DNA of 64,000 nucleotides from Blastocystis sp. Blastoise (taxonomy: Eukaryota; Protista; Bigyra: Opalinata). The translations under genes and the position numbers were made by a program. Under the pieces are notes generated by a model. The model worked only from the letters and a program-made list of their open reading frames with translations, was not told the origin of the DNA and made no database searches. The DNA is taken from the NCBI GenBank assembly GCA_039096225.1, contig JBBPEB010000034.1:496001-560000 (forward strand), written 5' to 3'. Positions 1 to 62,500 of the stretch are shown piece by piece (the stretch's first letter is position 1; each line of letters starts with the position of its first letter).

Positions 1-3000
1 ATTAATGGAGAAATAACCACGGTTATACCTATTATAAAATAGAACTAGTAATAGATATAGATATATATATATACAGTTATAGAGAATAGTAGGTATTTGA
101 TAAACAAGAGATTTACCACCTCCCGTTGGAGCTATTAATAACTATATATATATGTATATTTATGTATATATATATATATATATTAATAGTAACATATAAT
201 AACATATAATAAGCATATAATAATAATAATAATAATAATATAATAATAATAATATATAATAAGCATATAATAATAATGTATATATACCCCATTATGTCCT
301 TGTATCATTTCATTAATTGCCCATAATTGTCCTTTTTTAAATGTGTGTATATTAAACACATGAGTAGCTATATAGTATACTTTCTTCTTCATATTATCAT
401 CTATACTCATATTCATATTGATGTCTTTCTGTAATTCTATATTATTATCTATAGTATTCTCTATAGTATTATCATCTATAGTAACATCTATATCTATATA
501 TTTATCTTCATATTCTTCTTCATTATCATCAGTCTCCTCAGAATTCCCGCGGTTATATTCATCACTTTCATCAAGAGTAGTTTCACTATCAGAATCATTT
601 ATTGGATAAAACGAATCATCTTCTATTTCTTCCAGATCCCCGTGGGAAGTCTTTGTGTTTTCTGAATTCGTGATAGAATTAGGAATAGTTTTTATTAGAG
701 GAGAAGCATTAGTATTATTATTTAACTCTATTATAGGTGTTGAAGATATATTTGTAGCGATTTTATTATTATTATTATTATTATTATTATTATTCTGATT
801 ATTATTATTATTATTATTATTATTATTATTATTATTATTATTATTATTATTATTATTATTATTATTATTATTATTATTATTATATTTATTATTATTATTA
901 TTATTTAAAGAATTCGATAGGTCATAGTAAACATTCTTTTGAAGTCCTTCTTGGATGGATAATCCCCATGAATATAATCGATTTATAAGCTCTTCTTTCT
1001 TACCTCCAACGGGAATATGATATCGATGTAAGAGACGTTTTAATGCCGCATTCTATATAATAATAAATATATATATAATAATAATAATAAATATAAATAT
1101 AAATAATAAATATAAATAATAAATATAAATTATAAATATAAATAATAAACATAAATTATAAATATAAATTATAAATATAAATTATAAATATAAATTATAA
1201 ATAATTTAAAATATTAAATATAAATATATATAATAAATAATTTAAAAAATTAAATATAAATATAATAATAAATAATTAAAATAATAATAAATACAGTAAG
1301 TAAGTTCCATTGCGTTTTATATATATCTAAAATATTCATTTCTTTTGAATTTTCTTCATTAAATAATTTTGTGACTCCATCTTCTAATTCATCAGCCCAT
1401 TGGAAAAATTGACAACGTCCCTCATTCCAAGCTAACGGACAACAGAAAAATTCACGATTATGATTACGATTATGTTTTTTAACTTTACATAATTTTGCAG
1501 TTAATCCATGAGAACAAACAGGATATGTTGATGATAATGATAGAATAACCGCGGGAGTAGAGATAGATGTTTCTAGAGAGATAATTATATATATGTTCAC
1601 ATATATTATTTTTGAATAAAATAGAAAGAAAAAGAAATTATTGGTGAATATATATATATATATAGAGGAAAAAGAATATGAATATAAATAGTAATAGGTA
1701 TGTTATACGTGTGATAAAATGAATAACTATTAATGAATAATCATAATAATATAGTTCATAATATATATATATATCTAATAGACAGAATATTGATTTTTTA
1801 CATAGATTAATATATAACATTATATATATACTCATTTCTTTAATATGATCAATACATGCTAATATTTGATCACCATCTAATCCTTTACGCATAGGAATAT
1901 TACCGCGGTTATTCGATGAAATTGTATCTTCTTTATTTTGTTCATAGTCACTTGTTTGTGAATAAAAGTTGACTTTTGAGTCTAATGTATTTCTACGTTT
2001 AGATTTATGTTTTGATAATAATTTTCTCTTTAAATTTAATCGAATAAAATTATTAGAAATTAAACCATTTGAAGAAGTTCGAATAGAAGTAGATGCTTTA
2101 AAGAAATAAAAAAATATATTTAAAGAAATAAATAGGTATATAATTAAAAATCAATATATATATTTATAAATCAATATATATATTTATAAATCAATATATA
2201 TATTTATAAATCAATATATATATTTATAAATAAATATATATACCTCTTCTAGAAAGAACACTATTTGGACTTAAAATAAGTTTCTCTAGTTTCTCTGGTG
2301 AGGGACGTGGGGGTGTAGATAATAATGATGAAGAATCAATAGTTTTTATATTCTTATTTATTATATGATCATTAGAAATAAACATTGTATCACTATTAAT
2401 AAGATTATTATTACTAGACTTATTGTTATTATTATCATTAATAACTGAAATAGAATCATGAATAGAAGAATGAACATTTGATTGCATATCCTTTGAAACT
2501 ATAGAATTCCCGTGATTATTATCTGATTCTAGTGGAGATAGAGAGGGTTTTTCTTGATTTTGTGTATTATTTAAGTTTATAGAAGAATCAGGAATATATA
2601 ATCTTTTCTTATATACCGAAATAGATGACGATGAAATTAAATTAGAGTTATTTTGAGATTTATTATTTGAGTTTTTGGATACTACTTCTTCGTAAGTATC
2701 ATAATTCAATATGATTGGTTGTTGAGGTTGTTTCATTTGATTTGATTGGATATTCAAATTTTGGTTTTGAATATCATCTTCCTTATTAACAGTATTATTC
2801 ATATTAATTATATTAGTGTTATTTATATCCTTTTTCTTTTCATAATTATCTTTATTATTATCATTATCATTGATACTCTTATTACTAGTTCTTCTTTTTA
2901 TTATTTTCTCTTTATATAGTGATTTATATTCATTTATCGACATCTCTTCAACATCATCTATATAGGGGATATTATTATAATATATATTAAAAGTAATTTT

Positions 3001-59558: not shown

Positions 59559-62500
59559 ATGTGGATCGTTATATATATCTTAATATTTTCTCTGTTGGTG
59601 TCCGGTCATTCAAATGAGTTTTCTTTACATGAAAGAATGACAGAAGAACAGATCCTTTCAGAATTCAAGATCCCAGAAGTTATTGTATCTAATTAAAAAA
59701 TTATGGATAACTATTTGGCTAGTCTAGAGATATCTTTGATATTGATAGTTTTTCAATTGATCGTGGTTTGTCTGTTGATGATATGATAAAGAAACTAGAT
59801 TCTTATAAAATTAAATATTTCATAGATATCCGTCTTGTTGGGATGAATAAGAATGGAATGGGAAATATTCAAATAGATTCAGATCGTTTATTGAAGTTTT
59901 TCCAGAAATTCTCGGAGTATATTGTTATAATCGATAATATCTTTAATATAAATATAGAATAGATGATGAGGTCGTTGTATTAGATAAAGATGAAGAAGAA
60001 TCTAAATTAAAAATTAATGAAAAATATCAATTTGAAATCAGTCATGTTCCTAACTCCGTCTCTCAACAAATTAATAAAATTATAAAGTATCTGATATATG
60101 TTAGAAATCTATAATAATAATAATAATGATAAATTTACGTAATTTTAGTGAACATTTGAATGAGAATACAAATATAATTCCTACAAAATTAATTCACTCG
60201 ATTCTGGACAGTGATTATCGGGATAATCAATTCTCTTATACTATATATATTCTTAATACAGATATCTATACAAACCAAACGTATAAATATATATATATAT
60301 TATTATTATTATTTTTTATTGTTGATATTATCTTATATATATATTTCATTTTTTTCGAGATGTTTTTTGTTTATTAATTAATAATATTTATTATATGATA
60401 TTATATATATATATAGATATTCTTACAGTCCTTCTTTAATTTCTTGTCCTACTTCTTTGGGTATATCTAATTCCCACGATTATAAGTACTTCTTCTATGA
60501 TTTATCTGCTGAATACCATCAAGTGAATCCGTCCTATATACAAGAAAATGAGCAAGAAGGACATTCACTTCCAAAAATATACTCAAATAACCACGGGAAT
60601 CAACATGAATTTATTGAAGAAAAATTATTATCGGGTATATTTTTTATGAATTTTATATAGTTGATAACTAATTATTTATATTTTATGTATTCAATATGAT
60701 TACATTAAAGAATATATTCTATATATAGATTTATCTATATTTTGTATGAAGATTATAAAATATATGGTTACACCGCCTCTTTCTCATCTCCCTAACTCTA
60801 TATATATTCCTCATAAAGCAAATTCCCACGGTTATTCTTACGACGATCCTCGAAATCATATGCGAACTGTATATGTATATATAATAACATTATATGAAGA
60901 AGAGGAAGAAGAGAAGAATAAAAAGTCAAATCATTATGAAGAACAGAAGGAACAAGAAATTAAAGATACAATTAAACAATCATTACAAGTATATATATAT
61001 GATATTTTTATTGTTATTTATGATACAATATACTACCTATTATATGTAGATATATATATTATTATTATTTATACTTATTTTTAAAACCGATTAAATCTAT
61101 ATATATATAAATGGAACTATATATATTATCATTATATATATATAGTCTTTAATGCTTCCTTATCAAACACTTCAATTACAATATCTTTCCATTCCTCTAT
61201 TTAAATGTCCCCTATGTTTACAGTCTTTCTCCCATGCTAAGAAGTACTATTATCCATCCAATGAAATGAACGAAGAATCTGGTGCATCCAATGAAAATGA
61301 AGAGAAACCTGAATTTACAATTGATAGCGTTGTTCTTCATCATTATATTAATAAATATAAAGATACCATTATGAATACACTTAATATCACTACCAGTCTA
61401 TTTCAAGAAGAAGATATAATTCTACCTGTTTTTATGTATATATATATATATGTATTATTTTCTTATTGATTCTATATATATTTTATTATAAATAAATATT
61501 ATTTGCTTAATCAATTTTATAAATATATAATATTATTATTATTTTAGATATAAATTAAATACATTACAAACTTTACTTATCGACGAAATTCACCAGTCAC
61601 GGTCGTTCGATGACATGGTACTCGTCATCCAAACGAAAGCTAAACAAGTATTTATATAGACTATTATTATTATTATATTATTATTATTTATATTATTATA
61701 TTCTTATTATTAATTATATTCATATAATAATTATTATATATATTATTATACTAATTATTATACCTATTAATAATCATATAATACTATAAAATCTTCTCTA
61801 TTTATATATAGCATCGTATTCCATTTCAATGTATGAAGAATTCCCTCTATATATATCCTTCAAATCCTCTTCCTTCTATTCTTGGAACACTATTCACTTC
61901 TCTTTTTGGAATACTACCATCTCATATGTATATATATATATATATATTTATTTATTTCCTGATATGAATTATATATATAACTATATATAATAAAGCTATA
62001 TTCATACTTATATTATTAAATACTATCTATAGTTCTTATAACAGTATTCTACATGAATATTCCCGCGATTATACGTTTGTTTCTATTCCTGACGCTTTAT
62101 CTAATTTGTATCCTTCTCTCACTACAAACTTTAAACATACAAGTATACATTTATATATTATACTTATTATTATTCTATTTATTACTATTATATTTATTAT
62201 AATCTTATTATAATCTTATTATTATGCTAATTATTATACTTAATATTTTTATAAACAATAAACATTATTCTTTTCCTATAGATCAAGTGATGCGTGGATA
62301 TATATATAAGTATATACATATGTCTCGAGAGGATATATATCAAACATTATATCATTTCAAACAATATAATGTACCTATTAAAGCACTTCTAGATACAAAA
62401 CTATATAGAACATTCATTATACGTTGGAATATATTAATGTATATATACGATGATATTTCTTCCTCTTTTTCTCTTCAAAATTATAATCGAACATTGTTTT

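Follow-up and report, generated by a model that had tools for sequence, protein, structure and literature searches.

Highly iterated palindromes have been a puzzle of cyanobacterial genomes for thirty years. HIP1 (GCGATCGC) and the related iterated palindromes of cyanobacteria are short, GC-rich, hundreds-fold over-represented and spread genome-wide; they lie mostly in genes and in several reading frames, override codon preference and are lineage-specific, and the function of HIP1 is unsettled (PMC4390886, PMC13756078). A word with the same properties recurs in a 64 kb stretch of DNA from Blastocystis sp. Blastoise (hereafter the window; G000:C26:496001-560000, 21.1% GC) and throughout the 33.3 Mb, 34-contig assembly that holds it. 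A preliminary description of the window had called this word HIP1-like, and the comparison is apt, as it is a hyper-abundant palindrome placed inside genes against codon bias. Unlike HIP1, however, it resides in the nuclear genome of a eukaryote, a stramenopile with a base composition of 21-23% GC, and it is a degenerate 14 bp dimer-type site with two alternative half-sites rather than an invariant octamer. A cognate DNA methyltransferase was also not found in this genome in searches for PF00145, PF01555 and PF02384. The reading that we favour, and hold to be somewhat probable, is that the word is the recognition site of a dimeric DNA-binding protein and has been spread by a location-independent pressure, either drive or weak selection.

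Other described systems share part of this pattern. The uptake sequences of Haemophilus and Neisseria (uptake signal sequences and DNA uptake sequences) accumulate where protein constraint allows, and are explained by the preference of a DNA-handling machine together with recombination. As may be true of the present word, they are genome words with a molecular drive rather than a local function, but they are not palindromes themselves and depend on natural transformation, which is not known in Blastocystis. Very-short-patch repair by Dcm and Vsr at CCWGG in E. coli is a site-specific repair bias that both creates and protects a palindromic word; it differs in acting on one base of a 5-mer and in needing a methylase and the Vsr nuclease, neither of which was found here. 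The sites of E2F/DP (TTTSSCGC), BANP (TCTCGCGAGA), the yeast PDRE (TCCGCGGA) and the RFX X-box are also of dimer type with a CpG-containing centre, and the TTCCCGCG half of the word is E2F-like. Such transcription-factor palindromes, in contrast to the word, are promoter elements that number in the tens to hundreds, and the second half-site type of the word fits none of the four. Rickettsia palindromic elements and yeast mitochondrial GC clusters are, like the word, GC-rich palindromes in coding genes of AT-rich genomes, but they are insertions of 30-150 bp with hairpin arms, whereas the word shows neither indel nor arm pairing.

The word was defined by a palindromic weight matrix refined on 264 kb, made up of the window together with 200 kb of contig C8 (L001-L020) unrelated to it; 16 small loci were read besides. 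It has the two-fold symmetric form AT-W-M-C-C-R|Y-G-G-K-W-AT, with ATTCCCG as the best half-site and ATAA(C/T)CG as the second, and ATTCCCGCGGGAAT and ATAACCGCGGTTAT are versions of it written out whole. Little information lies outside ±7, and the sequence shared among copies ends by about ±10 nt. The matrix finds 25 matches in the window, whereas the same sequence reversed has one and simulations under order-1/3 Markov models give 0.4-0.8; the corresponding numbers for the C8 stretch are 22, zero and 0.9-2.1. Across the whole 33.3 Mb, the perfect 12-mer TTCCCGCGGGAA occurs 113 times (control, 0) and the strict 14-mer ATWMCCRYGGKWAT 820 times (reversed control, 2), while counts rise to 3767 (control, 233) with at most one mismatch and to 10844 (control, 4168) with at most two. 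Copies above background at up to two mismatches thus number about 6,700, or roughly one per 5 kb. Strict copies average one per 40 kb genome-wide and are about four times as dense in the window. All 23 strings quoted in the preliminary description occur exactly where it placed them, and 20 of these score at least 14 bits as instances of one motif; those at 29256, 31594 and 34813 are weak (8-11 bits). Its count of CGCG tetramers is also borne out, with 12 of the 14 in the window standing in motif context and only those at 6212 and 42768 outside.

Chance, codon-pair bias, or an artefact of assembly or polishing could in principle give rise to recurrent words of this kind. The common-codon version of the peptide N-R-G-N (AAT CGT GGT AAT) is already one mismatch from the word, and therefore part of the class with one or two mismatches is ordinary coding sequence. 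Against this explanation stand the 820 strict words where the control has 2, the codon permutation described below, and the choice by the copies of the rarest codons rather than the common ones. As for artefact, the assembly is Illumina-polished according to PMC12129017, the paper most likely describing this genome, and two public RNA-type runs have words in common, in small shares, with the region. The counts refute chance and artefact, to which we assign next to no probability.

An intron model was attempted and did not yield a clean length or donor signature, and coding DNA was therefore inferred from stop-free frames combined with a codon log-odds score. Raw length of open reading frames (ORFs) overstates the coding fraction here, because triplet repeats of the (AAT)n/(TAA)n type, which are extremely abundant in the window (AATAATAA, 706 versus 71 expected), hold several frames open. 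In 314 inferred ORFs a global permutation of synonymous codons gave 2.8 ± 1.6 matches, with a maximum of 9, compared with the 37 observed, and the proposed excess over a codon-shuffled null is thus upheld. Shuffling of codons within each ORF was dropped as a null in favour of this permutation: in a short ORF the few rare codons stay where they are, which makes the test overly conservative.

The reading frames give evidence that the word operates at the level of DNA. In 37 reliable sites the centre falls after codon position 2 (phase 2), giving peptides of the form [N/Y/D]-[N/S]-[R/H]-G-[N/D/Y], and in 25 it falls after codon position 1 (phase 1), giving I-[P/T]-[A/T/V]-[G/V]-I. These two phases are mirror images on a palindrome, and a DNA-level signal accordingly predicts their equal use. 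The codon-boundary-centred frame (phase 0), where TAA(C) halves become stop codons and the word needs P-R (CGG) or P-W, is represented by four sites only. The earlier statement that the word is read in several frames and strands consequently holds for the two mirror frames and much less for the third, and an account of all copies by one reading frame and codon bias fails on both the phase counts and the permutation.

In both mirror frames the word imposes rare codons (CGC, GGG, CCC, GCG, AAC and TCC), as had been claimed. The ratio GGG:GGT is 18:4 at motif codons versus 3:57 in general usage, CGC:CGT is 12:10 versus 2:37, and AAC:AAT is 9:3 versus 5:95, while CCC and GCG predominate where CCT and GCT are the rule. 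At synonymous positions the odds shift roughly 20- to 90-fold, a range that is inflated because the sites were chosen by score. Two mirror frames, rare codons and different peptides together bear out the view that this is a DNA word and not a protein motif. A signal in RNA or translation might be suspected from the two to three very rare codons that stand consecutively in every copy: ribosomes could pause at such a cluster, or the mRNA could fold or be bound by a protein there. It is a most improbable explanation, since the same nucleotides encode different codons and peptides in two frames, roughly a fifth of the copies fall outside inferred coding DNA, the two-fold symmetry of DNA is meaningless for a single-stranded signal, and the arms, which are mixed in excess and unpaired, form no hairpin.

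The word is close to saturating the peptides that can accommodate it. In the ORF set, 13 of the 15 compatible tetrapeptides [NSYT][RH]G[NYD] use the rare codons that perfect the motif. Moreover, these tetrapeptides are themselves about three-fold over-represented (15 versus 5.6 expected; the peptide in reversed order occurs twice), and the word therefore also shapes amino-acid sequences.

Two copies in conserved proteins indicate how the word is acquired. An exon for the translation termination factor eRF3 (L032:1276-1689) carries the copy ATT ACC GCG GTT ATT, whose product I-T-A-V-I aligns without gaps to I-T-A-L-I of human eRF3a. Similarly, an exon of an ABCC transporter (L019:3161-3943, minus strand) carries TCC CGC GGG GAT within W-P-S-R-G-D-I, which aligns ungapped to W-P-Q-V-G-R-V of MRP1. 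Such alignments imply that the word was made by synonymous or conservative substitutions on peptides that were already compatible with it. Judging by them, copies evidently arise in place through point substitutions on near-matching sequence, for example that encoding N-R-G-N or I-T-A-V-I, and not through insertions.

These observations bear directly on a mobile or templated origin. The copies could be in-frame mini-insertions resembling the Rickettsia or yeast mitochondrial elements, footprints left by transposons, or products of template switching that corrects quasi-palindromes. The contrast between a GC-rich palindrome and the AT-rich genome around it invites the comparison, and repeats are seen in this genome. 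Nevertheless, the alignments to human eRF3 and MRP1 cross two copies without a gap, no sequence is shared among copies beyond about ±10 nt, and the ORFs that carry copies, which include an ABCC transporter, eRF3, a GH31 hydrolase, a PIP5K-like protein and large He_PIG/PA14 surface proteins, are mutually unrelated. Furthermore, none of 79 sites lies inside repeats. A hairpin-templated origin also predicts matched arms. Arm covariation was tested with hairpin- and cruciform-forming elements in mind (repetitive extragenic palindromes, ends of miniature inverted-repeat transposable elements, GC clusters and quasi-palindrome correction), and matched arms fell below expectation. A mobile or templated origin is therefore largely refuted, and we regard it as extremely improbable. 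As a separate observation, short repeats with at least 255 matches genome-wide occur at L033:986-1136, 1619-1916 and 2771-2861 (G000:C2:225787-227787); they include a stretch of about 68 nt that matches itself on both strands, and they flank an ORF with three motif copies.

The arms themselves were found to behave as separate units. Genome-wide, pairs of ATTCCC with ATTCCC number 230, pairs of ATAACC with ATAACC 79 and mixed pairs 393, where independence would give 259, 108 and 335, respectively. The half-sites thus mix freely, as previously noted, with a modest excess of mixed pairs, which is the opposite of what a hairpin, a cruciform or template switching predicts. Isolated half-sites (ATWMCCR) are not enriched (229 versus 190). 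A perfect half is followed by a partner with zero or one mismatch 14 and 26 times, versus 0.1 and 1.7 expected. Both arms are needed, and each is chosen independently.

Individual positions are constrained to different degrees. Centres among 50 listed sites are CGCG in 16, CACG or CGTG in 27 and CATG in 7, with the two central letters independent of each other. The C at -2 is essentially invariant, a one-sided T there occurring 63 times versus 41 for the control, while the C at -3 tolerates T (990 versus 38 for the control), nearly always as ATAATC. TTCCCRYG by itself occurs 49 times versus 3, and its partners range in strength from strong to weak. This graded constraint looks like that of a protein-DNA interface. 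The two-fold symmetry combined with independent half-sites fits the proposal, also made in the preliminary description, that the word is the target of a dimeric DNA-binding protein.

Sites lie in inferred coding DNA in 81-87% of cases, versus 84-87% for near-matches to the reversed control word. The copies are thus embedded in exons, as had been reported, but this is not specific to them: composition-matched control words share the bias, because exons are the only GC-containing DNA. Along ORFs their relative position is uniform (mean 0.47), with 31 sites nearer the 5′ end and 30 nearer the 3′ end; an early impression of a 5′ bias within genes was abandoned once better frames and more sites were available. 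At a distance of 3-5 codons from the centre, third codon positions have a GC content of 0.24, which drops to 0.13-0.17 further out; the rise ends about 5 codons from a site. The pull reaches about 15 nt to either side, and no wider tracts of GC-biased conversion were seen near the sites. First and second codon positions are raised in GC to about 15 codons from sites, which indicates that the sites lie in patches rich in GC-encoded amino acids.

Copies are also clustered in some genes, with a variance-to-mean ratio of 1.7-2.1 in the window. Five strict 14-mers fall within 1.2 kb at G000:C4:240405-241587, and a total of eight is reached within 10.5 kb; the locus may be a gene that contains repeats. 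The CNNM transporter and legumain, the best-conserved genes of the window, carry no copies across 35628-37475 and 54381-55760, respectively, in contrast to poorly conserved ORFs nearby with up to six per 2.5 kb.

One alternative is that these are ordinary cis-regulatory sites, bound by an E2F/DP-like protein or another transcription factor and kept one by one through selection on the regulation of a nearby gene. The TTCCCGC(G) half matches the E2F consensus TTTSSCGC at seven of eight positions, the genome has seven E2F_TDP matches at about 5-6 loci, and the excess of mixed pairs (393 versus 335) would suit a heterodimer such as E2F-DP. This explanation is nonetheless unlikely. The uniform distribution along ORFs shows no bias to the 5′ end or the ATG, so that the sites are not promoter-proximal, and the exonic share is that of composition-matched control words. 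Some 6,700 copies clustered in loosely constrained genes, and compatible peptides that are nearly saturated, do not suggest selection gene by gene. In addition, the ATAACC/ATAATC half is unlike E2F, and the reversed control word is at background (2 copies), although the GGCGCC at its centre is the classic palindromic E2F core.

The resemblance to E2F and CSL sites that had been pointed out is correspondingly partial. It applies to the TTCCC half only, with ATTCCCGC fitting TTTSSCGC at seven of eight positions and ATAACCGC and ATAATCGC not fitting it; the TAACC and TAATC halves do not fit. The CSL (Su(H)/RBP-J) site YGTGGGAA is matched by the CGTGGGAA variant alone, and the commonest centre beside a TTCCC half is CGCG. 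At G000:C32:296068-298258 a pair of same-strand E2F_TDP matches is separated by 2 kb; these may belong to a protein with two such domains, like E2F7/8, or to a single domain split between exons.

A different possibility is that a DNA methyltransferase marks the word and that context-specific repair of T:G mismatches restores and creates it, in the manner of HIP1 or very-short-patch repair. The behaviour of the word is that of HIP1, which has been tied to cognate orphan methylases (PMC4390886). Both CCGCGG and CCRYGG are classic restriction-modification specificities, and the central alternation of G with A and of C with T could be read as deamination products. The earlier suggestion of a methyltransferase target found no support in the searches made for such an enzyme. 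The only C5-methylase (PF00145) match in the genome, at L037:1501-1938 (G000:C34:406469-406912), has the motifs FAGIGG, PPCQ and ENV and looks like DNMT2/TRDMT1. DNMT2 is chiefly a tRNA methylase. PF01555 and PF02384 (N4/N6 methylases) and Vsr have no match in the genome, whereas control genomes gave matches.

The word itself also speaks against such a mechanism. A one-base repair bias cannot write 14 positions that include transversions; the eRF3 copy, for instance, needs a change from a GCT-type codon to GCG and from a TTA-type codon to GTT. Methylation of the CpG would fall on the C at -2; if this base deaminated, T decay products would be expected there, and none are apparent (63 versus 41 for the control). 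As a restriction-modification target (CCGCGG or CCRYGG) the word is also ill-suited, as the genome yielded no DNA methylase beyond the DNMT2-like gene and the word is enriched, while such words are usually avoided. We therefore view a methylation-and-repair origin as improbable.

We return to a dimeric DNA-binding protein whose footprint the word would be. A location-independent directional pressure would then keep the word against strong AT mutation pressure, and purifying selection on proteins would decide which copies survive, such that loosely constrained genes rich in N, S, D and E carry most of them. The pressure could arise from a bias in mismatch repair or gene conversion that is coupled to binding, a molecular drive as proposed for bacterial uptake sequences; the site-specific repair bias raised in the preliminary description would find its place here. 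Alternatively, there could be weak selection for a high number of sites, as usually discussed for Chi or HIP1. We judge the choice between drive and weak selection to be roughly even. The near-saturated peptides, the location independence, the cost to proteins and the lineage-specific, genome-wide spread lean towards drive, and the absence from repeats leans away from it.

In its strongest form, which we advance only tentatively and consider rather less than probable, the proposal is that a dimeric binding or repair protein, having arisen among the Blastocystis of tortoises, skews mismatch repair or gene conversion in favour of the palindrome that it recognizes. The word would then write itself into whatever sequence nearly matches it, rewriting codons and amino acids in thousands of genes without benefit to the cell.

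Several points weigh against the favoured reading. The weight matrix was trained and scored on the same 264 kb, while the genome-wide IUPAC counts are independent of training. Either reading-frame constraints or a heterodimer may account for the excess of mixed pairs. That zero of 79 sites lie in the repeated 4.9% of the sample is no obvious prediction of pure drive. Finally, a binding protein was not identified: of the families searched for, only E2F/DP is present, and it explains one half-site type at best. Zn2Cys6, BEN, CG-1 and RFX gave no match in the genome, in searches made without a positive control that provide weak evidence of absence.

If the word is bound as proposed, it would constitute either a new kind of signal, acting genome-wide on chromatin or in repair, in a gut protist that is common, or a clear-cut eukaryotic case of a motif that propagates itself. 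Either outcome bears on the evolution of extreme base composition and codon usage. Against a background of 21% GC the word is conspicuous, and codon choice provides a measure of how strong it is.

The word is lineage-specific. Sites with at most one mismatch are absent from 58 kb of three other Blastocystis-like genomes (Blastocystis ST1 JDR, 59% GC, and a pair of Blastocystis-like contigs with 39% GC), although the density seen in this genome predicts 6.5. A site-rich ORF of 873 residues had no homologue in a protein database search, and two metagenome scans for close relatives found nothing. In the literature, full-text searches returned iterated palindromes from cyanobacteria only and no eukaryotic case, and the word itself appeared only in cloning primers. 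The terms 'palindrom' and 'methyl' are absent from PMC12129017, which reports cultures of the tortoise isolates, Nanopore sequencing (R9 for Rus-B, R10.4.1 for Rus-S and Hermann's) and two sister genomes.

The 25 copies in the window are listed below with the two conserved genes. Closest database matches of the proteins encoded in the window are from Blastocystis, at 45-55% identity, and tRNA and Rfam searches of the window gave zero matches.

Copies of the word and conserved genes in the window (positions in the 64 kb stretch; scores in bits; peptides as encoded at the site)
Feature	Position	Strand	Score	Remarks
ATAACCACGGTTAT	13..26		21.3	
ATTCCCGCGGTTAT	543..556		23.9	- strand reading Y-N-R-G-N; phase 2, 289-codon ORF
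ATCCCCGTGGGAAG	636..649		24.1	- strand reading T-S-H-G-D; phase 2
ATAACCGCGGGAGT	1545..1558		20.3	- strand T-P-A-V-I; phase 1; GRF zinc finger ORF
ATTACCGCGGTTAT	1899..1912		22.9	N-N-R-G-N; phase 2
ATTCCCGTGATTAT	2506..2519		16.2	right arm with tolerated A at +2; phase 2, 302-codon ORF
ATATTCACGGGAAT	5172..5185		16.8	phase 1
TTTCCCACGGAAAA (weak)	5627..5640		14.8	without convincing coding frame
ATAACCGTGATTAT	6665..6678		15.2	phase 2
ATTACCGTGGAAAT	8112..8125		18.5	
ATTCCCGTGAATAT	9793..9806		16.4	Y-S-R-E-Y; phase 2, 234-codon ORF
ATTACCGCGGGGAA	9980..9993		20.4	L-P-R-G; rare phase 0
TTTCCCATGGGAAT	11800..11813		19.0	F-P-W-E; phase 0
ATTCCCACGGGAAA	14705..14718		23.1	I-P-T-G; phase 1, 227-codon ORF
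ATAATCGCGGGAAT	23794..23807		18.8	N-N-R-G-N; phase 2, 541-codon ORF
ATAACCGCGATTAT	30142..30155		20.5	I-T-A-I-I; phase 1, 359-codon ORF
CNNM transporter gene	35688-37478	+		
Copy with perfect 12-mer TTCCCGCGGGAA	39629..39642		22.3	- strand I-P-A-G; phase 1, 247-codon ORF
TTTCCCATGGTTAT	42389..42402		16.3	phase 1
ATCCCCGCGGTTTT	49809..49822		20.9	- strand E-N-R-G-D; phase 2, 189-codon ORF
ATTCCCGTGGTTAT	50391..50404		25.8	top score in window
ATTCCCGCGATTAT	51514..51527		16.6	phase 2
Legumain gene	54396-55763	+		
ATTCCCACGATTAT	60470..60483		17.3	N-S-H-D-Y; phase 2
ATAACCACGGGAAT	60587..60600		21.2	N-N-H-G-N; phase 2
ATTCCCACGGTTAT	60822..60835		22.4	N-S-H-G-Y; phase 2
ATTCCCGCGATTAT	62059..62072		21.0	Y-S-R-D-Y; phase 2

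Near the start of the window (186-1702, minus strand), adjoining ORFs with a hint of a SAP domain and a GRF zinc finger carry three copies of the motif; their protein may be of a DNA-repair type.

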